The notes beneath the pieces were generated by a model. That model searched no databases. It worked only from the letters and a program-made list of their open reading frames with translations, and was not told the DNA's origin. This document shows positions 7,001 through 64,000 of a stretch of DNA of 64,000 bases, one piece after another. The DNA lies in NCBI RefSeq assembly GCF_022045235.1, contig NW_027266286.1, forward strand, positions 20,336,001 to 20,400,000, written 5' to 3'. A program made the position numbers and the translations under genes. The DNA comes from Haliotis cracherodii. Lineage: Eukaryota. Position 1 is the first letter of the stretch. Each line of letters begins with the position of its first letter.

Positions 7001-10000
7001 ATATAAAATTAGGGAAATGGACAAGGCGTAACTCAAATAAAGCAATAACTTAATAAGTAGAAATAAGTAGAAATAGTGAATACATGTATATACATCTTAA
7101 TATAATAATATCAATATTGTACAGAATTCATTATAGTACACTTCATATATACAGCTGATATTTTCTAACAAATAAATAAAAAGTTATTTTAGAAGTGGAT
7201 ACATATAAGTAAAAATATATAGGGGGAAATGTAAATAAAATCTATTATCTCAAAAGTGGGTGGATGTTATGTTCAAATGAATTTAGGATACAGGTAGAGT
7301 GAGTGAGTGAGTTTTTTACGCCGCTTTTAGCAATATTCAAGCAATTTCACGGCAGGGGACACCAGAAATAGGCTTCACACATTGTACCCATGTCGGGAAT
7401 CAAACCCAGGTCTTCGGCGTGACGAGCGAACGCTTTAACCACTAGACTACCCGACCGCCCCGGGTACAGGTGGAAACAGACAGAGTGATGTAACAGCTCA
7501 GTAAGGGTTAAACTATGTGTAAAGCATGCACTAGGAACCTAACAGTCTTTACGACATTTCATGTCAACTGGCAGGTTTGAGGGTTCCCCAAATTCTTGTG
7601 ATACTGACGACCAATGAAGGCCATGTTAAGAGTCATCCAATCACAGCCTACGAGAAGTCTGCCACTGCCGTTTTGGTAGACAGAGGCCTGTCACATGATG
7701 AGCAGTGATTGTCCCCAGGGCGTCAAGTCAACAGGGTTTACTGTAGATGAATACCGTATTCGACGTAATAAGCGCCAAGGGCGCTCTCAAAATTATAAAT
7801 AGAGGGTCTCATTAGAATATTATTTTTGTGAAAAAAACACAGTTGAAATATAAATTTTGTGGTTTATGATGACAGCCTGAAATGTTTATGTACGACTGAT
7901 ATATTTTTCCAGAATTTAATTGCCCATAATTGAAGGTACATATTACGCACGAGTGTGTATTATACGTAAATAAATAAGTCTTGTGTACATTAATCAATCC
8001 GAAGGGGTGCTAATTGGGATTGTTCACTAGCCAATATATTAGCAAAAATATTGTCGTGGGCGCTTATTAGAGCGGGACGCTTATTACGTTGAATACAGTA
8101 TACAACATGATGTGATGGATATGTGAGCACGAGGAGTGCACCCTGGAATGTAATCATAATGAAGACTGACACAACAACTGACATCAAATCTAGTACAGAT
8201 TTTGATATGTTATTGTATTCACAATATTTAATACCTGTATTATAGGAGGTATGGCCATGTTGACCTTGAACAGGGCTCTAGCCATCTTCCCGAGGCAAGA
8301 GAGTTAACTGACTTTGAAAGTCCAGTTTCCACCCTTGCCAAACTAGGCTGGTATTATGGAGTTACATTTTGGCTGGACTAACGAGTCTATGCATAGCCCA
8401 ATCAAAATCGCGCACTGAAATCAAAATCCAGTTCATAAACTGTCGTGCAGATTTCGGCTGATTGCAGGATTTGCAAAGCATGTGCACCGCCAACTCGTTG
8501 TCAGCAGATATTTTCCAAATCTTTTCATGTTGTAAATCAAGGTGCTCACATGATTTGATGCAATTCGCGATGTAAGACCCGTTTTATCACAATATAGATC
8601 TTGATTATCGATCAGATCCTCCTGACTGGGCACCACCATTTTGTGTGAAGCAAACACAAGTGATACGAGAAGTGGAATCTGATTGCTCCATAGGACAGGT
8701 TTAGAAGGGACATAATTGGTAATAGCCACTTGTGGCGCGACGATCGAGCCCAGGAATTCCAGCTAAGTTCGGCAAGGGTGGTGAATGAAACGTGAAATGA
8801 GCGATAAAACATCACTAGACCTGCTAAACATGATGATCTACAATTTTGTCGTATTTCCTGTTGTGCCAGAGACTAAGATTACCGTGTGTATTTGTTTTAA
8901 AAATAAGCTGGTAATAGCAATCAGCTGTACACTCTATCATATGTTAACATATTGATCAGAATAGCAAGGCTCAAATGTGAATCATCACACACCATGGCAA
9001 TACTGTCACAATGTTATATCAAATTGGGGTGTAACCATGGCAACACTGTCACAATGTTATATCAATTGGGGTGTAACCATGGCAATACTGTCACAATGTT
9101 ATGGCAATTGTGGTGTAACCATGGCAATACTGTCACAATGTTATGGCAATTGTGGTGTAACCATGGCAATACTGTCACAATGTTATATCAATCATGGTGT
9201 AACCATGGCAATACTGTTACAATGTTATATCAATAATGGTGTTACCTTGGCAATGCTGTCACAATTTTATATCAATCGTGGTGTATCAATGGCAATACTG
9301 TCACAATGTTATATCAATCATGGTGTTACCATGGCAATACTGTCACAATGTTATATCAATCGGGGTGTAACTATGGCAATACTGTCACAATGTTATATCA
9401 ATCATGGTGTAACAATGGCAATACTGTCACAATGTTATATCAATCGCCATGTAACCATGGCAATACTATCACAATAGTTGATCAACTGTGGCAATACTAC
9501 CAAGACTGTATCACATGAAGTTTAACTGCGGTAGTATCACCACTAGCAAGATATTTGTGTAGTTTGTCTGGCAGCATCGCCCTTTGTGACAATGCTCACA
9601 AGTTACAAATGGCACATCGTCTGTTCTTAGGCAGGCCATGTTTGGTACTCTGTCCACTCCCAAGAGCCCGTGTGTAGGTGAAGCACACTCTGTCTGGCCC
9701 GTACTGATCCTGCAGCGCTGTGATGTCCACATCCTCCGTGTACAGCACCTCCACGTGGAGGGTCCGAGTCGTGTGTACCGTCCCTCCCTCTCGGTACAGG
9801 AACGGGTTGTCGTAGGGGTCGAGCTGAAGCAGGGTTGCCTCGCAGAATCTGTCTGTGTCCGATTCTTTTATTGTCATGACAACTGTCACGTAATGAGCTT
9901 TGTAGGTGCAGTAGAAATCCGTGAAATATATATTTGTGTTTGCCGTGAAGAGCGCTTCAACAGGAACATCCAGTCTCCGGTTGCCGTAATAAGAGGAAGT

Positions 10001-13000
10001 GGGAATTCTTCCAGTCATTCTGTCGAGGGAGATACTGAAAAAGAGGCCATCAATGTTGTTGTTGATTGGGGAGTGTGGGTCTCCATTGCGGTCTTTAATG
10101 TATTTCTCCATCAATCCATTCTTGTTTTCCATGATGTCGTCCATTTTGTCTCGTGGCTTGTTTCGGAACATGACCTTCACCTCATGTGTAGATGGAACTG
10201 ATATGAATAACTCGGCCTTTTCCTTCAGTCTCTCCAAGTCATCCTTACTCATCACTGTTAAACATAAATTTTATTCAGGGTTAGAAATTATTCTTCTTTT
10301 TCACATGTCCTTAAAAATGTGTCTGTTACAGTGTTGCCATCTACCTTTTCATACCTCATTCAGGAACCAGTAAATTAGGAACTGTCTTTCTGGACTAGTA
10401 GGGGGCACGGGTGGCCCAGTCGTCTAAGGCGCAGCGATTTGCTGTGCAGAGTTGCGTCCCGTGGACATACCAGAAACCTATGATTGTGGGTTTGAATCCC
10501 GGTTCACCCCGATTATGTTTCTAGGTTTGTCAGCACCATACCAGTGCTCGTGGGTTTCACCGAAGTGGTAAACGTCTGAGACCTGCATCACTTCGGGCTT
10601 TCCTCCCACATTAAGCTGACACACCGTGATATGACTGGAATACTGTTAAAAGCGGCGTTAAACCCAACTCCCTCACTCACTTCTGGACTAGTAAATTAGG
10701 AACTGTCTTTCTGGACTAGTAAATTAGGGACTTGACATTGAAGGATAGGGATTTGTCAAGTAGGGACCATTCATTTAACTAGCTATTTAGAGTCATGGGT
10801 AGTCTGTCTTACAGACCCTGATACAAATATATATCAAATACAGCCCATGCAAGTCTATAATGTTTGGCAAGTCTAGATCACTGCAGTATGAAAATGAAGA
10901 GAGTTACTGGGCTCCTTTTTATTATATTTTTGTTAAGATAACTGAACAACTGTTTTTATGTACGATATGTTCATTTCAGAGACTAGATTTTAGTCTAAGT
11001 CATGGGTGGATGTCGGTGCAATAGAGGACACAATAAATATTTTGCATGCTAAGAGCAAGAGGCTTACAAAAAGACTGTTAATCAAGACTGGTTATCCTCT
11101 GGCAATGATGTTTTATATTTAAAAAAAAAAAATGCAATTTGTTGAAGGGGCATATAACATTAGATAATTGCGAAATGCATAATTCATTATGAATCAAGAG
11201 CATCTGGATGGGCTATGAAAGAGATTTTTCTGATTAGATAAGGTAATCCATTGATGCCTATAATGTTGAGGGGTGGTCGGGTAGCCTAGTGGTTAAAGCG
11301 TTCGCTCGTCATGCCGAAGACCCGGGTTCGATTTCCGACATGGGTACAATGTGTGAAGCCTATTTCTGGTGTCCCCCGCCGTGATATTGCTGGAATATTG
11401 CTAAAAGCGGCGTAAAAACCATACTCACTCACTATAATGTTGATTCAATACCTGAGTTCAGGGTGAAACTTTTAGACTTTTGCTGATAATGATACTGTTT
11501 GTGTCCATCGTGATCCGTCCGTGTCATCTGCAGGAGAACTCCACAATAGGTTTGCCGGGGGGGTAGTGGGAACGGGACCTTCACCCCAGAGGCAGGCATG
11601 GGGGTCTCAAGCAGGTACTGGGTGTCCTCCCGGCACAGGTATATCAGGGTGGTACAGGCATTGGGGAGGCTGCGGTCAGGCAGCAACTTGTAGTCTGCTG
11701 GTGGTGTGTATCGTGAAGAAACTTCAAGATCATCCTGTTGAAGATGAATAAGACTTAATTACATACTATATGAAGATTTGTTATCTGATGAAGATACAAA
11801 CATTTATCTAGCATTCCAAAATGAGTGCCTTTTCGAGTTTTTTAAGTTATGTATTTTATTATTGCATTCAATATACCGATACAGTAATGTGAAACTAAGC
11901 ATTCAAGCCTCCTCTAGTAAACTGGTCCTGTTATCAGTGAAATACAAGTCACCTCTACAAGCCATAAACATTAGTTTTGCTTATATTAAGAGTAAATTGG
12001 TAATTTTGTAAATCCAATTTTAGAAATTTTAATCACAGTTGCTGCAGATTTGGTGCCACAGTATAAATAGGTGAGGTGAAATGGGGTTTAACGTCGCGTC
12101 CAAGATTATTGCACTTATATAGCGGCGTGCATGTGCGTGTGTGTGTGGCTGCGGCTGCTTGTACTAGTCCGGACTGATGCCGATTTATAGTGCTGGCCCA
12201 CTGAGATACCATGCCACAGTTTAACATGAATACCCTACTCAGACACAGTATACTGACTCCGAGCAGACCAGTCCTTGTTTAAGCCCCTTAATGCCGAACG
12301 CCAGACAGGGTAACAACAAGTACCATCTTTTAACATGTTTTGGTATCACGCGGTGGTGGATCAAACCCCGGACCTTCCGCTCTCCGGGCGGACGCTCTAC
12401 CACTAGACCACGGAGGCGGTCCCACAGTATAAATACAATCTGCAGACAGACTGTATATTTTACTTACAGGCCCCAATGATCTAGCTGGAAGTTTGTAGAC
12501 TGTAGTGAAAAACATTATTCACTCTCTTACTGTAACCATGGCAACAGAAATTGCCTCCTTCGGAGCTAAGAGAACCTGCTTACCAGTTTTTGGAAGAACA
12601 TCACACTTTCAAGCGGGATTTTTGTTTTGCTGAGACTGAGTGATACTTCTGTTCCTATAAGAAAAACTTTTTTTATACAGATTCTGGTTTCCATGCATCT
12701 TACATGTACATGTATTATATTCAATTTGATATTTAGTTTTGCAAGTAGTTTCAGGAGGCACTTGCAATTTTAGACTGGGTCCCGTTCCACAAAGCGATCG
12801 TAGTGCAATGACAGTCGTAAGTCTATGTTACAGTATGGGAGTTACGTTCACCTTTGAGCTACAATAGCTTTGTGCTTGTCGTAAGAGGCGACTAACGGGA
12901 TCGGGTAGTCATGGTAGTTGATGCATGTTATCGCATCCCAATTGCGTGGATCGATGCTCATGATGTCAATCATTGGATTGTCTGGTCCAGACTCGATTAT

Positions 13001-36178: not shown

Positions 36179-37321
36179 CAGTCAAGTCTCGTTAATCCGA
36201 CACTCGTTAATCCGACACTCGGCTTTATCCGACACAAATGATGGGAACCGATTGATTCAGTGCTATTTAGTCCCGTTAATCCGACATTCTCGCACTCCGA
36301 CTCCGACACACCTAATTTGCAACGAATTACCGAAATCACTCATTAATCAGTCTCGTTAATCCGACACAGTGGTCAGCGTACTCCGTGGTCATCTGACCGC
36401 GAGTACACAACCCCGTGTTTTGACACGCACTGGCTGCAGAGATTAACTTAACAATTAACAGGAAAAGCTATTCAAACCTGTATGTACAAAGCTATACAAA
36501 TGTAGTTTACAAATTGAAGCCAGATAAATGTGCATGAAGCCAGTTTAAAATACGAACAGGTATATAAAACATGGTCGACTCACCATGGTCGACTGGTATG
36601 TAAACAAGAAAGCATGGATGACTTCATTAATATTCAAAGCCTGGCTACTGATCTTGGATTGGCAAATGCGATTGGAGCAACGCCACGTGGTATTGCTGTT
36701 GGACAACGCCCCATCCCATGCTACTGTCGACATAACTAATGTGAAATGTCACTTTTTGCCACCAAACACTACATCGCACATTCAGCCACTAGATGCCGGG
36801 ATCATTAAGAATTTCAAGCTTTATTATAAGAAACAGCAAATGAAATTACACCTCGACAATGTTGATGCTGAAGAACCACAAGCCCTAGACGTCAAGCGAG
36901 CAGGGGACTTGGGGGAGAAATGTGCCTTCAAAATGTTAGAAACAGAAAACACTAACAGACTATTTTAAGTAGATGAAGCAAGTTGTTAAGACAGTAGCAC
37001 TTTCATTTACAAGAGGAAACGTGTGTCGTTGATCATGTGATATATTCAGTGAGTAATGTCTCTATTGTTATGTATAAATGGGAAAATTATTATTATTTTT
37101 GCACAGTCATTAATTATAAATTAAGGAATGAATGAATAAACGACATAACAATATTAATATTTCGTTTTTAATGATTTTATTACAAGGTACACACGGTTAT
37201 TATCTATCGTGAAGACGCCCGTTTTTCGATCACAAATCACTTAATTTCGTTAATCCGACATACTCGTTAATCCGACACAATCATGTGCAACCAACGATGT
37301 CGGATTAACGAGACTTGACTG
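36179..37321 (+). mobile_element. Internally deleted pogo/Tigger (Tc1/mariner superfamily) DNA transposon
   Basis: 24-nt TIRs cagtcaagtctcgttaatccgaca / tgtcggattaacgagacttgactg, TA TSDs, and subterminal gttaatccgaca repeats. Confidence 0.95.
36585..36968 (+). pseudogene. DDE_1 (CENP-B/pogo) transposase fragment
   Basis: NKKAWMT, LLLDNAPSH, FLPPNTTSHIQPLDAGII motifs; HTH region absent. Confidence 0.92.
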
Positions 37322-38953
37322 TATATTGCTTTCAGTGAAAAGATGTCATCTCTGAAGTAACTTAGTTAGATCTATAGGTCATTCACACAAACTCCAATCA
37401 CAATTTTCTCCCCTTTTTTTTATTTCGAGACAAAGTCGCTACAAATAGATGGACAAGGGGAAGCACTGATGGTAACAGACAAGCTGAATTTGTTTGAAAA
37501 ATGTACTTACATGAATATCACCAAAGTTTTGTTCAACGACAAAGATTTATAAGGTGCTTTATTTGCCGGTCCACAGGGACTGGCAGTCACATGAATTACC
37601 AGTCCAAGCCTGATTTTACCGGTAAAAAATTGGTAATTACCGGTAAATGGGAACGCTGATTAGGGTGAGAATTAAAATCCTAAAATGGCAACATCAAAAA
37701 CAGGGAATCATGATTTTCACATTTACAAAGTGCTCAATTTATGATTGAAGATTATCATGTACTAAACACAGGGATGAGAATGAATATTTTCTTTTTCAGC
37801 TGAAAGGTCGTTGCAATGTAGTGTGGTCCATAATTTGGGGGCGATTATGGGGGAATCCATCAGATTTTAACAAATTTGATGTCACTAAAATTTGCGGACC
37901 TGCGGAAGGTTCTCAGCCCTGTAAACAGTGTCATATTTCATTTAAGGCATATGCATGAGAAACAGTTGGCAACATGGATATCATTTTGTCATGACATTTC
38001 CTGAAAATACTATTGTAATGTACAGATGTATATAATAAATCATACATTTTTAATAAACTGTGACGTCACTGTGCATGTCAAATTGTTGTCATTTGTAGAC
38101 AAGTATGTGATCTAGCCGATGATAAAACACACACAATAAAATTTTCATCCTACAGTGTACTATACAAATACACTTCTAGACTATTCTGTATTAGTACTGT
38201 AAGATTTTAGCTGCTAACTTTGGAAGGTTGCTGTCAATGTTTTATCATTTCAAGACAAATTCTGCGATTGCAGAAAGATTTGCAGAAAATGTAACTTTCC
38301 GCAGAATTGCAGAAAAATCGTTCAATCTGCCTTTTATTTTATCAATTAGTAAACTAATTGTCATCATTTTTAAGCATTTTAATCAAACTTTCCATTCCAA
38401 TATTGCCCTAAACAATTAATATGTGATTCAAACATGCAAAATAGGACTATTCATAAAACAAAATAATGCTTTTTAAACATTCTTGTGGTATTATGACTAT
38501 ATAAACTGTTTACAGCTAACCATAAATAAATATGTGACACTGTGCATATTTATTTGCATGTCTTGAAATGTCTAAATGCAAGGGATTATAGTTTTTAAAG
38601 GAAGAAAAAGAGTTTGTATTAATGACCGGGGGAATGTTTTTACCACAGAATTGTACAATTTTAGCCACATAGTTTTGGTAATTTTCCTAATTTTGATAAT
38701 TTTACCCCAGAATATGTCTATATGATACAATATTTAAGAACGATTTCCCCAAAATTATTGTAAAAAAAATTTAGTTCCACCAGTAATTCCAGCCTAGTTC
38801 GGCAAGGGTGGAAACTGGACTTTTACAGTCAGTCAACTCCCTTGCCTCAGGAAGATGGTACAGGGATATCAGGATGTGTTGTTCAACCATACACTGTGAT
38901 AAATCTGACTGAGCCATTATGCATGATATTTCCTCATCAAGTCAAGGATGATG

Positions 38954-38959
38954 TTTATT
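38954..38959 (-). terminator. Candidate polyadenylation signal AATAAA of the 118-aa gene
   Basis: tttatt on the + strand just past the stop codon. Confidence 0.45.
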
Positions 38960-38967
38960 GTGTTGTG

Positions 38968-41900
38968 TCAGCGCCACAGCAGTGAGAATGTCACACACAC
39001 CAGGCACAGCAGCATGGAGTAGACGTTCATCGGGGCACCGCCTGAAATTAGAAATAAGCTGAGTGACAAAGAGCGAGTACATACTGAGACAAGCTGCTGA
39101 TGTTGCAGGTCATGGTTCCAGTGTTTAACCTGCTTCTTATTATCTTCCCTTGTTCCTGGTGGACTGGCAGCTCTAAACTTTACCAATACCCCCTAATTGT
39201 TTTCAGTCCCAACTTTAAACAAATAAAATAACTTATGAAAATTACCTTGTTTTAATGTTCAATAGAATGACATCATCTCTGAAATAACTTAAATAGATCT
39301 ACATGTTATTGACACAAAGTTCAGTCACAATTTTCTCTCTCTCTATTTTTTTTAATATTCAGAGACTGTCCCTACAAATATATATTTAACCTCGAAACCA
39401 AGAGAAATTATATTTCCTTGCACTAAGGATAGACAAGGGGAAACCCTGATGGTAACAGACAAGCTGGCTTCGTTCGAAAAATATACTTGTATGAATATCA
39501 CCGATGTTTTGTTTAACAACAAAGATTTATAATGGAGCGACCATTTGATTTCTATGGGGGGGGCCGGAAGTATTTACAAATGAATAGTTTGTTGGAGATA
39601 ATCAGTAAAATAAATAGAATGTTTACTACTGTGAGAAAAATGAATAGTTTGTTTCCAGATATAATTTTGCATGTCATTGCAACATTTATCTATTAAATTA
39701 AAGAATTATTCCAGCATTATAAACGTAAAAAATTTCCGCCGCCTTCGGCGCAACATCACTATTACTTTAATCTTATTTGTTATTGTCTATAGCTGTTCAT
39801 GTTATAATACACCACAGGCTGCATTTGCTGAAATATGATTGCATATTTTACTCTATAATAAAATTGCAAAATTACCATCTGAAATGAATAGTTTGTTCAG
39901 CTGTATGTTACAAAAAAATAGTTTGTTAGAAATGGCTTCAGAAAAAAATAGTTTGCTGAGAAAACAACTTCCGGCCCCCCCATAGAAATCAAATGGTCGC
40001 TCCCTAAGGTACTTTATTTGCCGGTCCACAGGGACTGGCAGTCAAATGAATTGACCATCCAAGCTTAATTTTACCAGTAAAAAAAAATGGTAATTGCTGG
40101 TAAGAAGGATCACTGGCTTCAATGTTTTGGCAATAACAAATATGTTTCCCAAATCTAGAGTGCAACCTCTAGTGATCAAGTCAGGACCAGACAAATCAGT
40201 GATGGAGATTATGAGCAACGAGCCACATCGTCGTAGTAATATGGCACACTGTCTACTAACATTCAGTCTGACCACAAGGGCTGGGACAATACACCAACTG
40301 TGCAATCCATACGTATCACGGTACCTTGTTCACGATCCACTACGTATCACAATACCTTGTTCACGATCTGATACGTATCACAATATCTTGTTCACGATCC
40401 GATACGTATCACGGTACCTTATTCACGATCCGATACGTATCACAATACCTTGTTCACGATACGATATGTATCACAGTACCTTGTTCACGATCCACTACGT
40501 ATCACAATACCATGTTCACGATCTGATACGTATCACAATATCTTGTTCACGATCCGATACGTATCACGGTACCTTATTCACGATCCGATACGTATCACAA
40601 TACCTTGTTCACGATACGATATGTATCACAGTACCTTGTTCACGATCCGATATGTATCACAATACCTTGTTCACGATCCAATACGTATCACAATACCTTG
40701 TTCACGATCTGATACATATCATGATGCCTTGTTCACCATCCGATTCGTATCACAATACCTTGTTCACGATCTGATACGTATCACAATACCTTGTTCCGAT
40801 ACGTAGGGTGTGGTGAAAGCCATCTGTTTCACAGACATAATGGCCAAATACCTGGTACACTGACGATTTGCAGTTGGCAGTGTAAAGTGTTGGGCAATGG
40901 ATGAAAATATTTATGTTTTCACCACTAATTTTCACTATTTTATGTTTGTTGTTTAACGCCACACTCAACAATATTCCAGCTATATGAAAAGAAGCAAATC
41001 TGAACTAGACAATCCAGTGATTGACATCATGAGCATCGATCCATGCAGGGGTAGAAACTAACATATATAGTCCACTAGTCCTTATAATGATAACATATAG
41101 CAAAACCCTTAAATATGGCAAATGTCTACTAGTCCTTATGATACCTTAACTATTGGGCAGTTTGGCAAGGACTACAGGACTAGTGCCAGTTTCTAACGCT
41201 GCCATGTAGTTTGGATACGATGACATGCATCAAACAGTGTTAGAAACAGAAATCCTATTCTAACCCGGATCTTCAGGGGTCAAATTTATTATTTCACTAA
41301 TAATTAGTCTGTGTTGTAACAGTTATAAAGTAAACATTTAAGGTATGAATCATTATCAATATGTTTTTCTTTGCGTGCGACTGTGTTTGTTTTGTTTGTT
41401 TATTGTTTTACACCGCACTCAGCAATATTCCAGCTATAATTACGGCGGTCTAAATAATTGAGTCTGGACCAGACAATCCAGTGATTGATATCATGAGCAT
41501 CGATCCACGCAATTTGGATTGATGACATGCATCAACCAAGTCAGCGAGCCTGACCACCCGATCCCATTAGTCGCTTCTTACAACAAGCAGTCGTGATTGA
41601 TGCTTGTATTAACAAGTAAATAATTGCAATCCACCGGTTCATTGGTGAATCATCTCACTACCACTAACCACATATAGAGAATTAAGTCACCTCTCCAAAC
41701 CAGCATATGTTCCTGGTAAGCTACTCTAACCCAGGTTGGTTGGTTGGTTGGTTTGTTGTTTAACGCCGCACTCAGCAATATTCCAGCTATATGACAGCGA
41801 TCTGTAAATAATCGAGTCTGGACCAGGCAATCCAGTGATTAATATCATGATCATCAATCCATGCAATTGGGATTGATGACGTGCATCAACCAAGTCAGCG

Positions 41901-44900
41901 AGCCTGACCACCCGATCCCGTTAGTCGCCTTTTACGACAAGCATAGTCGCCTTTTACAGCAAGCATTGGTTGCTGAAGACCTATTCTACCCCGGAATACT
42001 CTAACCCAGGCACTCCACAGGGGTACCTGCAGCAGTGTATACCATGATATAGTCAATAACGTACTTGTAATTTCACAATCCGAGATACTCCAAATTATAG
42101 TTTTCACAGATGCGATCTCAGCATCAAAGACAATTTTTTGAAAGATGTCACATGATGACTCTTCTTCCCTCAGACAGCTCAGGTAGGTGTTCTGCTGCCT
42201 GGAACAGAGAGAACAGCGTGAGACGGAGTTGCACATCATAAGGTTTTGGTTGGTTGGTTGGTTTGTTGTTTTACCCCGCACTCAGCAATATTCCAGCTAT
42301 ATGACGGCGGTCTGTAAATAATCGAGTCTGGATCAGACAATCCAGTGATTAATATCATGAGCATCGATCCACGCAATTGGGATCGATGACATGCATCAAC
42401 CAAGTCAGCGAGCCTGACCACACGATGTCGTTAGTCGCCTTTTAGGACTAGCATAGTTGCCTTTGAGGGCACGCATGGGTTGCTGATGACCTATTCTACC
42501 TGATCTTCACGGGTCGCACATCATAAGGCCTGTTTGGCATGGACACTGAGGTTTGATATCTCATCTGCAAAATGGAAGCCTGTCTGCAGAGCTACAGTAG
42601 CAGCATAATTTCAAATATATAAATGTGCAATGACATTATTCGAATCCTCTTACAGCATTGCCATATGTCCTGTATTTTGGCCGCAACCACACTAAAACTC
42701 AATCTTCACTGTCAACTGGTAACAATTATTATTGCCAATTTTAATTGGTCACGTATACCTAAGGACAAAAGTGATGATGTTCTAATCTGGACACAGCAAG
42801 GTGTTGGGGCAGTGAGAATAATCCTTCCAGGCCTTTTTATTCGAGATTTTACTTAAAAAACAAGCTCTCAAATGTGTTCTCTTTTGCCTTGAAGACTCAA
42901 GTGATTCAGCAGAAGATGGGGCCCATAGGCTTTTTTAAGATTCTCTTTTGTCAATTTAGATTGTAACAAATTCTGCCTGTACACACACTGTGAGTGAGTG
43001 AGTATGGTTTTACGCGAGATGGTATACACACTGTGGTGAAATGTCTTCTTTAACCCTAATGCCTCTTTAAACTCCATCAAGGTACACTGATCAATTTGTA
43101 AACAAATAAAATTCACATCATAAATTCATTTTTATTAAGGGGGGAGGGGGGGGTTGCACAGGGGGCACGAGGTGCGATTTGCTGTGCAGAGTTGTGTCCC
43201 TTGGGCATGCAAGACACCTATGATTGTGGATTCGAATCCTGGTTCGCCCTAATTATGTTTCTAGATTTGTCGGCACCATACCCTGCTCGTGGGTTGCACG
43301 GAAGTGGTAAACGAAACCAGCATCACTTCGGGCTTTCCTCCCACATTAAGCTGGAATACGACTTAAACCCAACTCACTCACTCATTGTTACAATTCATTT
43401 TCAATCTTTAGTAAATAGATTTGGTGACAGTAATATAAATTATGCTTAGGGTAGATCTAAGTTACTTACAAACAGTAAGCACTGGTGCCATTTGATGTGC
43501 TGTTCATTGTTGTGGGAGGGGGCCTACAGGCAGTCAATTCACAAGAACTCACTGCCACTGGGATGACCCACACAACCGCCACTGAAACAACCACAGCATC
43601 AGGAAAATTCTGGGATGAAGCATTAGGATCATAGATAACTTGAGTTACTGTTGATAGATGGCATAAAGTATGCTACCCAGCTAACAATTTCAGGTTATGG
43701 CAACTTTGTGTTTACGTGGTTGTGACGTTAAGATATTATATCCGTCCACAGTTCTTCTGTGGACTATTTGTTGTGATAACGTTGTATTTTACGTTATGGA
43801 ATGTTGTATTTTACATTGTGGTAATGTTGTACTCTACGTTGTTCTGCCGACTACCATGGACGCTGTCACAACAACGTGAACTAACTTTGTGTTAGAAGGA
43901 TGAAATAAGTTGTGACGACCCTATCTCATGACAATACCCCACGAAAATGTTGTAAAAACATCCCAAAAACATTTCGCTACATGTTCCGGAATTGTTTTGA
44001 AAACATGTCTTATTCAGGTCAGTGTGTATGGTTCGAGATACCCTTTATCAATGTTTTGAAACCAGGGCGTCCAACAGTCCTGTTAACAGTTAGGTTGTGT
44101 TTTGCTGACAATGTCCAAAACGTAAAAATACCACCGAGCTGTTACCACATGACTATAACAAATAATCAGACAGGGTAACCCTTTAAGCTTGTACTGCAGG
44201 AAACAAAATAGGAATGGCAGACATGGTAATCAAAATATAGGATATTTAAGAATTGAATTTCAAAAGTAGCATTTTAGTGATCACTGGCATGTTTTGTTGT
44301 TTTGTTGTTGTTTTTGTGTTGTTGTTTTTAGGGGGGGGGGGTTCTTATCGGGTTGTTTTTTTTTATCAAATCGCTGATAAGATAATCGTCGCCGATAAGT
44401 ATAGAATCGTTTAGAATGTTTTGGAAAATACGCAAACACGAACGCCGAAGTGTACATTCCGCCATATTGGATAGATTTCACAAAATCACGTTTCAGGTAT
44501 GCCGGCTATGAGACGCCTAATATAAGATCACGTATATTTCAAACTCAGTTGCGATACATGCATCCCCGAATTCCACATACATTTTGGAATTAAATGACAA
44601 ATAATCTTTGTCACCAATTTAAAGTATCTAGTTGGAATCAAGCGAAATAAATTAGATCTAGATATGGAAACGAACACTGTACTAGTAAAACTGTACTTGT
44701 TGAAATGTAAAAGCAAAATTCAGATTTTACACTGTGTAGCATTTTCTCCTATCCATCGTCTAGTATTGCATACATTGGCTCACGCGTTTGATGCTATTCG
44801 TGGGAAGGGTATCGTAGCACGAATTATGGAATTTAAAAATATAGATCTACAATACAACAAGCAAGTAAATTCAACAGAAATCGTAAAAGTTTCCGTCCTG

Positions 44901-45882
44901 AATGACTCCATGACTGACGGAAAGTCACGCACGACGACGGTAGTTATTTGCATTTCTGACTAATTTTCTCGGTTACATTGAAAAACAAATAACAGTACGC
45001 AGATAGTCAGAATGTGTCTGATTACTTACATGACACATTTATGTATTTACGATCCCTTAATCAACCAAAATCCTCCTGGAAATCCCGCGTACTGTTGTCA
45101 ATGAACACGCCAATCTATAAAAGTGATATATCTGGTAGTGATGTCATACGGAAGTAAACATTGTTGTAGATATTTGGTCATTTCTTTGAGGTGAAAACTT
45201 TAAACTCGGCATCCAGCGTGTTCTTTGATTTTATCTAGTTTGCATCATCAACATCGCCTTGAAAACTCACAGATATGGCAGAAACCTTTTTGTGTAGGGT
45301 CACATTATTTATACGTAGTAAGCAGTACGTCGGATGGCGTCACTCATGACCGCGGTGTTATGTATTAATGCGCCACTGCGATCATCAGAATATAGGCAAA
45401 ATGTATCGATTCGATGGTGAAAAGATGCGATTTTAGGGTGTGTAAGAAACAGGTTACTGCACTCGTGTCTGCCAGATACCATTGATCTTACAACTCGTTG
45501 TTTCAAAGCGTATCTAGCTCGCTTTCATTCGTTGTAAGATCAGTGGTATCTGACAGGCACTCGTGTAGTAATCTCTGTTTCCCAGTCCATTTTTGCACGT
45601 TGCAGACCGCCGCTAATTTGCTAAGATTCTTAAAACATTTGCGATAACTGTTTACAGAATCAGTTTCACACACTGATTTGTTAAATATGTTTGTTGTTTA
45701 CATAAAATGTCATATTACGTCAATATTGTTTCGCCTTCGCCTAGGCTAGATCGGAAAAGAAATGTTTCTCACAAAACATACGCTATACCGTAATTACTAA
45801 AAGCAGGAACTCTAAGATCATAAACTCTTGTTTCGAGCATCTTACCACAAACTAGAATCACTGAGGCTATTACGTTCATCAT
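38968..45882 (-). CDS. Small secreted, probably GPI-anchored 6-Cys protein, RGM-N-domain/neuritin-like; complement(join(38968..39041,42065..42198,43470..43581,45846..45882)), 118 aa
   Basis: Four exons with canonical donors (gtaaga, gtaagt, gtacgt), pyrimidine-rich CAG acceptors and consistent phases (357 nt). Protein: MMNVIASVILVCVAVVWVIPVAVSS-CELTACRPPPTTMNSTSNGTSAYCLQQNTYLSCLREEESSCDIFQKIVFDAEIASVKTIIWSISDCEITS-GAPMNVYSMLLCLVCVTFSLLWR. It has a hydrophobic N-terminal signal and a hydrophobic C-terminal tail, with AATAAA 8 nt after the stop. Confidence 0.82.
39533..40004. mobile_element. PIF/Harbinger-type MITE
   Basis: ~37-nt TIRs ggagcgaccatttgatttctatggggggggccggaag, TAA TSD; the empty paralogous site (gatttaTAAggt) is visible at about 37544-37555. 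Confidence 0.9.
40306..40803. repeat. 31-nt minisatellite, about 16 copies
   Basis: Unit cacgatccgatacgtatcacaataccttgtt. Confidence 0.92.
40944..41279 (-). mobile_element. SINE family A, deleted and interrupted
   Basis: Homology; MITE insertion at 41046-41201. Confidence 0.75.
41046..41201. mobile_element. Small TIR element inserted into a SINE-A copy
   Basis: caggggtagaaact ... agtttctaacgctg with flanking ccatg duplication; the SINE resumes on the other side. Confidence 0.55.
41385..41590 (-). mobile_element. SINE family A, 5'-truncated
   Basis: Homology to the other copies. Confidence 0.85.
41736..41995 (-). mobile_element. SINE family A
   Basis: TSD tactctaacccagg. Confidence 0.92.
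42244..42515 (-). mobile_element. SINE family A (~270 nt, no tRNA head), full length
   Basis: 13-bp TSD gcacatcataagg; (AACC/AAAC)n tail. Confidence 0.92.
43161..43384 (+). mobile_element. SINE family C, internally deleted
   Basis: Homology. Confidence 0.82.
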
Positions 45883-59313: not shown

Positions 59314-60096
59314 TTCCGGATGGACAAGGCAAAGGACCAACACTCATTGAAGCTGCTGCGTGTGGCCGAGGACTTCTGCCAGGGACAGATGGTGACAACA
59401 ATCACTCATCTATATCGGAACAAATCTCGGGAGTACTTCGATCAAGTCCTGAACAAGGAAGATGGCCTGATGTTGCCCTACAAGAAAGACAACGGGGGCG
59501 ACCCATCCTGCCCCATCAACGGCAGATTGAAGGGACTGTTCTTTGCCGCTACGTTGGTGCAGGGGAGAATTCCAGAGGCATCGCCATTCGGAAATACTCG
59601 GTTGACGCTTCCAGTGGAAGAGCTGATTGGACCAGACACGAACCTTTACTTCGCCGATTTCTTCTGCATGCCTATAATGTCAATAAATAATAACCACTAC
59701 ATTGTACTGGTGGTGACGAAGCAGGGATCACCCTCCGACCTGTTCTGCAACACAATTCTCCCTCAAATCAACATCAATAACAACTTATTCCTAACACGGA
59801 GAGACGGGCCAAATGGACCTTCTTTTACAATACCTTTCAAAACAGGGTTTGATCACGACGGGCGGCCTCACAAGTTGTGGATCGAGGTAATGTACACCGA
59901 GGCCATTGATATGGCGAACATGCTAATCAAATATGGCGATGCCATAGTAACAACGTGTAGGACATTCGGCGAAGGAAGCAGCAAGAAGGAAACGGGTGTG
60001 AGGAAACATACAAACTGTACAATATGTAGTTATAACCCTTGTGTGAGGTGCATCTGTTGCAAGAGAGTTCTCTCTGGTCGAGATTTTGACTTGTGA
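59314..60096 (+). CDS. PHYHIP-like copy 2 (PHYHIP_C domain exon, in-frame ATG at 59320)
   Basis: 258-aa ORF with LYRNK, PYKKDNGGDPSCPING, GLFFA, SPFGNTR, LYFADFFC, HYIVLV, EVMYTE, CTIC. Possible acceptor cttcag ends at 59313; no upstream exons found. Confidence 0.92.
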   Translation, partial: FRMDKAKDQHSLKLLRVAEDFCQGQMVTTITHLYRNKSREYFDQVLNKEDGLMLPYKKDNGGDPSCPINGRLKGLFFAATLVQGRIPEASPFGNTRLTLPVEELIGPDTNLYFADFFCMPIMSINNNHYIVLVVTKQGSPSDLFCNTILPQININNNLFLTRRDGPNGPSFTIPFKTGFDHDGRPHKLWIEVMYTEAIDMANMLIKYGDAIVTTCRTFGEGSSKKETGVRKHTNCTICSYNPCVRCICCKRVLSGRDFDL

Positions 60097-63423: not shown

Positions 63424-64000
63424 CTACTTGTGCTGTCTTTTTGTCGAGGGCAAACCCAACTGAAGGTTGCACAAATTGCACCTGGTATTCTTTGGAATGC
63501 CCATAATTGAGCTATGTCCTTGCCCAAATGTTTCGACATTTTCAAAATACGCATCATTCCTATGTCTGTCTAACAGCCACCCAATGTCCACATTTTCTGT
63601 GTAAAACACTTCAATATTCAAGCAAACCGAGCATGTGCATGTGAATACCTGCCAACCATACACTGAGTTTTCTTTATACAGGAAGGGGTTGTTGAAAGGA
63701 TTAAGCTGACGCAAGCATGTCTGACAAAACACATCTGCATCTGAACCCTTCCTTGTCATCACTAGTGTGACATAATGAGGACCTCTACTACTGGTGCAGT
63801 AGAAGTCTGTGAAATACAAGCAAGTGTCCATATCGAACAGTACGTCAGCAGGAACGTACAAACGCTTGTCACCAAAGCAGGAAGTTGAAGGTACTTTCCC
63901 TGTCGAAAATTGGACCGATGCACTGAAAAACAAACCATTGAGTTTCCCGTTGATGGGCGATCCCTGGTCTCCATTGTGGTCCTTCAGGTAGGGCTTCATG
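63424..64000 (-). CDS. PHYHIP-like copy 3 (PHYHIP_C domain, 5' end beyond window)
   Basis: MKPYLKDHNGDQGSPINGKLNGLFFS, LYFTDFYC, HYVTLV, EVFYTE, CNLCNL. Confidence 0.93.
   Translation of the reverse strand, partial: MKPYLKDHNGDQGSPINGKLNGLFFSASVQFSTGKVPSTSCFGDKRLYVPADVLFDMDTCLYFTDFYCTSSRGPHYVTLVMTRKGSDADVFCQTCLRQLNPFNNPFLYKENSVYGWQVFTCTCSVCLNIEVFYTENVDIGWLLDRHRNDAYFENVETFGQGHSSIMGIPKNTRCNLCNLQLGLPSTKRQHK

Follow-up and report, generated by a model that had tools for sequence, protein, structure and literature searches.

The locus raises the question which protein is encoded by four short exons in the genome of the black abalone, Haliotis cracherodii, and in which process this protein may act. 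An earlier note had read the product as a stand-alone relative of the RGM N-terminal domain (RGM-N) and of neuritin, possibly serving as BMP co-receptor or decoy. Taken as a whole, the evidence is explained best, at about even chances of being right, by a fast-evolving, GPI-anchored, RGM-N-like binding protein of the sperm surface.

Gene structure and annotation

All coordinates (Table 1) are positions within the window, i.e., the whole analyzed stretch of 64,000 nt from contig NW_027266286.1 of H. cracherodii, with the gene located on the minus strand. Script-based assembly of the four exons from the window yields 357 nt, corresponding to 118 codons plus stop codon, and the acceptors of all three introns are of the polypyrimidine-AG type. 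The translation is letter for letter identical to RefSeq XP_071113889.1 (H. cracherodii, "uncharacterized protein"), confirming the derivation of a 118-aa protein from four short exons. The gene had been regarded as hidden, but is already annotated in RefSeq for black abalone and is thus itself no discovery.

Table 1. Features of the mini-protein gene (positions within the window)
Feature	Position	Strand	Description
Exon 1, coding part	45846..45882	-	ATG 45882-45880; residues 1-12 (MMNVIASVILVC) and first base of codon 13; donor GTAAGA
Intron 1	43582..45845	-	phase 1, GT..AG
Exon 2	43470..43581	-	residues 13-49; remainder of putative signal peptide, C26, C31, Pro/Thr/Ser-rich stretch with both sequons, C49
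Intron 2	42199..43469	-	phase 2, GT..AG; SINE-like repeats inside
Exon 3	42065..42198	-	residues 50-94; both predicted long helices, C58, C66, C91
Intron 3	39042..42064	-	phase 1, GT..AG; 31-bp minisatellite, MITE-like element and SINE-like copies inside
Exon 4, coding part	38968..39041	-	residues 95-118; predicted omega site S95-G-A, spacer, hydrophobic tail; TGA 38970-38968
AATAAA polyadenylation signal	38959..38954	-	8 nt past stop

Spliced RNA contigs of two related abalone species (X1 and X3), mapped to a 6000-base stretch that includes exons 2 to 4, display the junctions of exon 2 with exon 3 and of exon 3 with exon 4. The former joint (42197>43469) is present in both X1 and X3 contigs and the latter (39040>42064) in that of X1, each reading CT..AC on the plus, i.e., GT..AG on the minus strand. 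Contig pieces 43469-43582 (X1, X3) and 42064-42197 correspond to exon 2 and exon 3, respectively, and the contigs terminate at ~38953, just beyond the AATAAA signal. Exon 1 is based on the RefSeq models and on the identical N-termini of orthologous database proteins from four species. The four-exon gene is real, spliced and expressed.

Orthologues from H. rufescens, H. discus and H. walallensis have been deposited in GenBank since 2013 under the name "sperm protein". Literature searches for a publication behind these accessions or behind the label gave none. A suspected origin of these entries from the sp6 submission is unconfirmed, and sp6/FITZAP is a different protein. A HMMER family search retrieved members in Haliotis only, and no paralogues were found in the genome of H. 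cracherodii. The gene is a single-copy gene of the genus Haliotis.

Protein features and predicted anchoring

The protein contains six cysteines (residues 26, 31, 49, 58, 66 and 91; spacing x4, x17, x8, x7, x24) and two N-glycosylation sequons (N39-S-T and N43-G-T). Its N-terminus is hydrophobic, while its C-terminus is composed of S95-G96-A97, the 6-residue spacer PMNVYS and a hydrophobic stretch from M104 to W117 (14-15 residues; Kyte-Doolittle 2.1-2.9), followed by R118 alone. All these features, including the hydrophobic tail devoid of a cytoplasmic domain, agree with the earlier description. The C-terminal tail is identical across four Haliotis species, and C91 is missing in one species. 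Judged from the sequence, a signal peptide would be cut near residue 23-25, and the mature part of ~70 residues is acidic (pI about 4.3) and probably carries two N-glycans.

The GPI signal was assessed by a sequence rule comprising small residues at omega, omega+1 and omega+2, a polar spacer of 5-10 residues, a hydrophobic end of ~12-20 residues and no cytoplasmic tail. In this rule-based reading, S95-G-A, the spacer and the hydrophobic end agree with the general pattern. Since the hydrophobic tail is not long enough to span a membrane and no cytoplasmic part is present, GPI attachment probably occurs at S95. The product is a stand-alone six-cysteine mini-protein, probably GPI-anchored.

Predicted fold and possible relation to the RGM N-terminal domain

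Structure models predict, with low to moderate confidence, a hairpin of two long helices (residues 42-64 and 68-87) and an N-terminal strap held to the hairpin through C26/C31. At the same level of confidence, the predicted layout resembles the three-disulfide RGM-N domain, with helix 1, which is not predicted in the models, degenerated into a glycosylated Pro/Thr/Ser loop. RGM-N itself consists of three bundled alpha-helices with three disulfides (PMC7354924). The RGM N-terminal domain (RGMA/B/C; PF06535; PDB 6z3m, 6z3j, 4ui0-4ui2, 4uhy) is the closest solved structure, ranking first among 48,161 solved chains in two separate models, with non-significant margins. It is also on top with two different aligners, at small Z margins and Foldseek E-values > 0.3. 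Structure-based identity to RGM-N amounts to 16-23 % as compared to 0-10 % for the other top matches, and the structural alignment begins and ends at the first and last cysteines.

The cysteines are spaced x4, x20, x8, x7, x21 in abalone RGM and x4, x22, x8, x7, x21 in human RGMA (4uhy_C), such that the x4, x8 and x7 spacings of the mini-protein are identical to those of RGM, whereas its x17 and x24 differ from x20-22 and x21. Y55 (C3+6, three before C4) occupies the Tyr position common to RGMs, including abalone RGM, and MAFFT aligned five of the six cysteines as well as this Tyr with RGM.

On the level of sequence profiles, hmmscan of the 118-aa protein yielded no Pfam family at E<=10, and exon-by-exon Pfam scans revealed nothing relevant. 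A genome-wide search with PF06535 (cut-off 24.2 bits) recovered the true abalone RGM (L008, 64.9 bits) and left the mini-protein locus unmatched at E<=10; further weak RGM_N matches (L009-L015) were chance-like, with the gene structure of L011, which was inspected, not being comparable. Phmmer of the whole protein against the PDB gave chance transferrin matches only (E>0.09), profile A2 had no match in the PDB, and single-sequence comparison with RGM-N by hhalign resulted in P 0.048. Within the length limits set, a word search started from the abalone RGM exon yielded no candidate sequences.

The mini-protein further differs from RGM by the absence of the RGM_C/vWD domain, the GDPH autocleavage site and the neogenin-binding part: it stops 27 residues past C91, whereas abalone RGM runs on into FGDPHLRTF within the same exon. 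Two introns interrupt the domain of the mini-protein, whereas that of abalone RGM is contained in a single exon; in addition, the mini-protein has no detectable profile similarity to RGM-N and evolves very fast. Of the earlier RGM-N-like reading, fold rank, cysteine spacing and Tyr are thus retained, while the PF06535 match is absent. The kinship is remote and only moderately supported.

One may alternatively consider a Haliotis-only orphan, i.e., a fast-evolving, secreted or GPI-anchored helical hairpin of neither RGM-N nor neuritin ancestry, in which cysteine spacing and fold would resemble RGM by coincidence or convergence, because disulfide-stapled small helical hairpins allow few layouts. 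The failure of every sequence or profile method to tie the protein to RGM or neuritin, the small Z margins and high Foldseek E-values, the unpredicted helix 1, the two introns within the domain and the loss of C91 in one species are all in line with such an orphan. It nevertheless appears rather unlikely, though to be taken seriously, considering the three exact spacings plus Tyr shared with RGM, the top position of RGM-N across models and aligners, its higher structural identity, the coincidence of alignment ends with the outer cysteines, and the apparent GPI anchoring, as in RGMs and neuritin.

Sequence divergence and candidate functions

All 24 variable columns are located within residues 23-101 and cluster in helix 3. 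The dN/dS ratio is about 1 versus H. rufescens, and the proteins of sister species differ by 15 %. The variable residues of helix 3 gave no significant result in a helical-face test (P 0.32). Exons of the gene diverge faster than its introns; faster exon than intron divergence is also known from lysin.

In case of a function in BMP signalling, a minimal RGM-N surface protein would bind BMP2/4-type ligands via the RGM interface and serve as their co-receptor or decoy, be it in the mantle, the shell field or another somatic tissue. This would be consistent with the nearest solved fold being the BMP/GDF-binding RGM domain, with the requirement of RGM-N for a membrane tether for full activity on GDF5 (PMC7354924), and with the presence of a conserved BMP2/4 in abalone (L019). 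However, RGMs contact BMP/GDF through the Gly in the RGD/RGN loop as well as through Leu103 and His106 (RGMB numbering) after the fifth cysteine (PMC7354924), and the four species read D, I/T, F, Q/T, K, I/L, V/I after C66, so that contact Gly, Leu and His are absent. The same stretch is Q-G-D-I-R-F-Y in abalone RGM, which retains Gly-Asp-Ile at the RGD-loop site, and R-G-D-L-A-Y-H in human RGMA. Moreover, no part of the protein varies more than the equivalent surface, in spite of a nearly invariant BMP2/4, and HMMER retrieved the family from Haliotis only. Together with the "sperm protein" names of the orthologues, this renders the co-receptor or decoy role improbable, and the suggested mantle, shell-field or neural roles are not supported. 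A predicted complex of residues 26-95 with the abalone BMP2/4 dimer scored 0.12 versus a mark of 0.34, which speaks neither for nor against binding.

Neuritin (CPG15) possesses a C-x8-C-x7-C core and a first cysteine pair spaced longer than x4; it evolves slowly and represents a conserved family that is found mainly in chordates, with expression in neurons. The mini-protein shares its whole-protein architecture, i.e., signal peptide, one six-cysteine domain and rule-based GPI signal, its 118 aa (versus about 140) falling within about 115-145. NRN1 clusters are nearest among the named clusters in language-model features of a protein atlas, with scores of 0.84 (whole protein) and 0.76 (mature part); values below 0.9 represent a lead only. 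PF15056 (NRN1; cut-off 27 bits) matched neither the protein at E<=10 nor the locus, and its genome-wide matches (L016-L018), all elsewhere, were at chance level. From the neuritin-like claim, architecture and nearest cluster thus persist. An orthologous or analogous GPI-anchored neurotrophic factor of the nervous system is very improbable in view of the missing profile match, the sub-threshold atlas scores, the restriction to one genus, the 15 % sister-species change as opposed to slow neuritin evolution, and the depositors' name.

The sperm role is drawn from database names only. In the preferred reading of an RGM-N-like sperm-surface protein, the product would be a surface binding module expressed in sperm or testis, the partner-facing surface of which may comprise helix 3 and the loop that connects it to helix 2, a face used by RGMs for their ligands. 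This region changes quickly between species, similar to known abalone fertilization proteins, and the most likely role would be sperm-egg or sperm-surface recognition rather than conserved BMP signalling. A more specific version, unlikely but not far-fetched, holds that a true but highly diverged module of the RGM-N/neuritin superfamily was redeployed as GPI-anchored sperm-surface recognition factor, with diversifying selection acting on the old ligand face (helix 2-3 loop, helix 3) in response to a partner that is egg-side or female-derived. If true, it would represent the first RGM-N fold used in fertilization and a membrane-bound addition to the lysin/sp18 recognition system of abalone.

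Abalone is a classic model of species-specific fertilization, the known sperm proteins of which (lysin, sp18, FITZAP) are soluble and acrosomal. Provided the sperm assignment is true, a fast-evolving, probably GPI-anchored "sperm protein" would make a candidate for those steps of sperm-egg recognition that take place at the membrane and about which little is known. With respect to RGM, the mini-protein suggests that the N-domain may exist free-standing and GPI-tethered, with neuritin as a possible vertebrate counterpart, and that it may drop its BMP-contact residues yet retain the disulfide scaffold. The significance for fertilization and RGM/BMP work depends on the remote kinship and on the tissue assignment from database names.

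Among known systems, Bouncer/SPACA4 (10.1101/354688, PMC8488580) are small, cysteine-rich, GPI-anchored gamete-surface proteins, the sequence divergence of which can set the species specificity of fertilization; the analogy is functional only and implies no common ancestry. The three-finger fold of Bouncer/SPACA4 is beta-rich and contains 8-10 cysteines, in contrast to the predicted helical mini-protein with six, and the Ly6/uPAR three-finger fold is ruled out by the six cysteines, the all-helical prediction and the lack of a UPAR_LY6 Pfam match. Saposin and lysin/sp18 folds are excluded by cysteine pattern and predicted structure. Lysin, sp18 and sp6/FITZAP (PMC6952181, PMC9022041) are sperm proteins of Haliotis in which, as in the mini-protein, the signal peptide is conserved and the mature part diverges rapidly. 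Unlike the mini-protein, however, lysin and sp18 lack cysteines and are cationic, soluble proteins of five helices, and FITZAP is a disordered poly-Asp peptide from two exons, all of them without a GPI signal and without the cysteine pattern described here.

Gene structure, annotation and transcripts

The earlier note had proposed four short exons for a GPI-anchored six-cysteine protein, and a script check of the joined model found every listed feature present. The exons yield 357 nt (118 codons plus TGA), interrupted by introns of phases 1, 2 and 1 with the donors GTAAGA, GTAAGT and GTACGT and with acceptors that all consist of a pyrimidine-rich tract and CAG; a polyadenylation signal (AATAAA) is located 8 nt 3' of the stop. 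The 118-aa protein has a hydrophobic N-terminus, cysteines at positions 26, 31, 49, 58, 66 and 91 (C1-C6), N-glycosylation sequons at N39 and N43, and a C-terminus in which S95-G-A is followed by a short spacer, 14-15 hydrophobic residues and Arg118 alone.

Table. Exons of the gene and further elements in the window and elsewhere in the genome
Feature	Position	Strand	Remarks
Exon 1	45882-45846	minus	joined in frame
Exon 2	43581-43470	minus	joined in frame
Exon 3	42198-42065	minus	joined in frame
Exon 4	39041-38968	minus	joined in frame
Minisatellite	40305-40800		intron 3; 31-bp unit, about 16 copies, 86% matches
MITE-like element	39534-40003		intron 3; internal repeated AATGAATAGTTTGTT motif; 42-nt inverted ends (39534-39575, 39962-40003), 86% complementary
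SINE-like repeat	about 40940-41060, 41380-41600, 41740-41990, 42250-42500		introns 2 and 3, several copies; core ...AACGCCGCACTCAGCAATATTCCAGCTATATG...
PHYHIP_C (PF19281)	9596-10255	minus	single-ORF gene/fragment; E 1e-35 to 1e-38 for the three
PHYHIP_C	59320-60096	plus	single-ORF gene/fragment
PHYHIP_C	63424-63999	minus	single-ORF gene/fragment
DDE_1 transposase fragment (PF03184)	36585-36968	plus	pogo/Tigger-type; E 5e-25; between STK40 and the sperm-protein gene
Abalone RGM gene (L008)	G000:C1:79994281-79994481	minus	genuine RGM; matches human RGMA, E 1.6e-11; whole RGM_N domain and start of vWD part (FGDPHLRTF) within one exon
TGF-beta ligand array (L021-L028)	G000:C12:80168931-80246829		outside window; ~19 head-to-tail copies, 4.19-kb period, and one inverted copy; single-exon unit, divergent TGF-beta-family ligand (PF00019, about 115 bits each)

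Exons 2-4, the three largest, gave no match in Pfam scans. A word search with the stop-free frame around exon 3, in which the exon-3 residues alone were scored, retrieved a single 118-aa protein (P0001), identical letter for letter to the joined model in a script comparison and used as query in all whole-protein searches. Since P0001 is NCBI entry XP_071113889.1 ("uncharacterized protein [Haliotis cracherodii]"), the gene is not hidden, as had been supposed, but already annotated. It is single-copy in the H. cracherodii genome, and orthologues are found in H. rufescens (XP_046370929.1 / AGJ90075.1), H. discus (AGJ90076.1), H. walallensis (AGJ90077.1) and H. asinina (XP_067676441.1; 51% identity). 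All three GenBank entries (AGJ90075.1-AGJ90077.1) and their UniProt records carry the name "sperm protein", for which a literature search by accession and keyword retrieved no source paper. Identity with sp6/FITZAP was rejected, the latter being a poly-Asp peptide encoded by a two-exon gene (PMC6952181).

Contigs of four sequencing runs (X1, X3, X5 and X6), none recorded as RNA, were placed on window positions 38900-44899, with exon 1 lying outside this stretch. The gene's exons are covered by a 389-nt contig of X1 (depth 724) and a 410-nt contig of X3 (depth 940). Both contain the gap 42197>43469, corresponding to the predicted exon 2-3 junction, and that of X1 also the gap 39040>42064 of the predicted exon 3-4 junction; the gap ends are CT..AC on the plus strand, i.e., GT..AG on the minus strand. 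The exon 1 side of the splicing scheme is supported indirectly, because 52 nt precede exon 2 in the X1 contig and the N-termini are identical across the orthologues. As every listed difference of the X1 contig reproduces the H. rufescens protein, the X1/X3 transcripts derive from sister species. Runs X5 and X6 provided no contig over the gene's exons (38900-44899), which would fit sample-specific expression. The four-exon gene and its splicing are confirmed as proposed, and the locus had been annotated before.

Contigs of all four runs also pile up on the SINE-like copies (summed depth 1e4-1e5), accounting for most spurious joints among the placed contigs. Elsewhere, the three PHYHIP_C copies in one 64-kb window suggest a local family expansion, and in the G000:C12 array a signalling ligand has been amplified in tandem, which is unusual. 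The window also includes 138 N.

Possible likeness to the RGM N-terminal domain

The cysteine spacing of the 118-aa protein (x4, x17, x8, x7, x24) resembles that of abalone RGM (C-x4-C-x20-C-x8-C-x7-C-x21-C) and human RGMA (x4, x22, x8, x7, x21), with the same Tyr at C3+6 as in RGM. Two AlphaFold2 models (H. cracherodii-led, pLDDT 62.7; H. discus-led, pLDDT 66.8) both predict helices at 42-64 and 68-87, and a three-residue helix alone in the N-terminal segment. For both models, the top-ranked of 48,161 chains in VIA-align is 6z3m_C, the N-domain of RGMB (68/74 residues aligned; identity 16% and 22%). Model residues 25-95 are aligned with chain residues 53-125, and the alignment ends therefore coincide with the first and last cysteines. 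Cysteine pattern and predicted fold provide consistent but modest support for RGM-N likeness.

Sequence comparison provides nothing significant for a link to RGM-N or neuritin. The Pfam scan of P0001 returned no family at E<=10, and neither PF06535 nor PF15056 matched the gene's locus in searches of the complete H. cracherodii genome, while PF06535 recovered the genuine abalone RGM (64.9 bits). Phmmer and profile searches against PDB yielded nothing real, and neither BLASTP with the RGM-N exon of abalone as target (E 0.10; 13 residues) nor hhalign (P 0.048) was significant. When 1.84 billion representative proteins were searched with a profile, Haliotis relatives and one repeat artefact were retrieved, nothing else. 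In the protein atlas, two unnamed molluscan clusters score 0.93 and may represent distant kin; neuritin (PF15056) follows with 0.84 for the whole protein and 0.76 for the mature part, both below the tool's level for more than a lead. The proposed RGM-N/neuritin-like structure is partly supported: by spacing, Tyr and top fold match, not by any significant sequence or profile match.

Cys91 is replaced by Arg in the H. walallensis orthologue, and the H. asinina RefSeq model lacks Cys49 and carries a 35-residue insertion precisely where exons 2 and 3 meet (between residues 48 and 51). The insertion may stem from an erroneous splice-site call or from a genuine alternative exon. Both deviations weaken the six-cysteine rule.

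Ligand contacts and divergence

RGM contacts its ligand via the Gly of an RGD/RGN loop, Leu103 inserted into a hydrophobic pocket and His106 stacked on Trp (PMC7354924). These residues are all located C-terminal of the fifth cysteine, where human RGMA reads R-G-D-L-A-Y-H and abalone RGM Q-G-D-I-R-F-Y. The 118-aa protein instead displays D-I/T-F-Q/T-K-I/L-V/I after C66, and therefore lacks the RGM contact residues. Abalone BMP2/4 was located (L019), and complex prediction of residues 26-95 with it returned no verdict, neither for nor against.

Among four North Pacific Haliotis species, all 24 variable columns fall within residues 23-101, with no change in the signal sequence (22 residues) or in the C-terminal 17 residues (P about 1e-5). 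Changes are enriched in helix 3 (12 of 23 columns, versus 11 of 55 in the rest of the mature protein; P 0.007). Comparison of exons 2 and 3 with the H. rufescens-like contig revealed 22 nucleotide differences, 17 of them protein-changing (dN/dS about 0.95). Divergence amounts to 8.9% in exons versus 2.7% in non-repeat intron pieces of the same run (P 2.5e-5), the intron figure being biased downward by the 90% likeness filter. This pattern is not that of a BMP co-receptor or neuritin. The BMP, mantle and neural functions suggested in the earlier note are not supported.

The data are best explained by a helical mini-protein of the RGM-N/neuritin type, probably GPI-anchored and glycosylated and presumably disulfide-stapled, which would act as a fast-evolving, apparently sperm-surface binding protein of Haliotis. 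While the gene itself was already known, its structural classification and its mode of divergence are new. In abalone fertilization proteins the signal peptide is conserved and the mature part changes rapidly, and in lysin exons diverge faster than introns; the 118-aa protein displays the same combination of conserved signal peptide and fast mature part.
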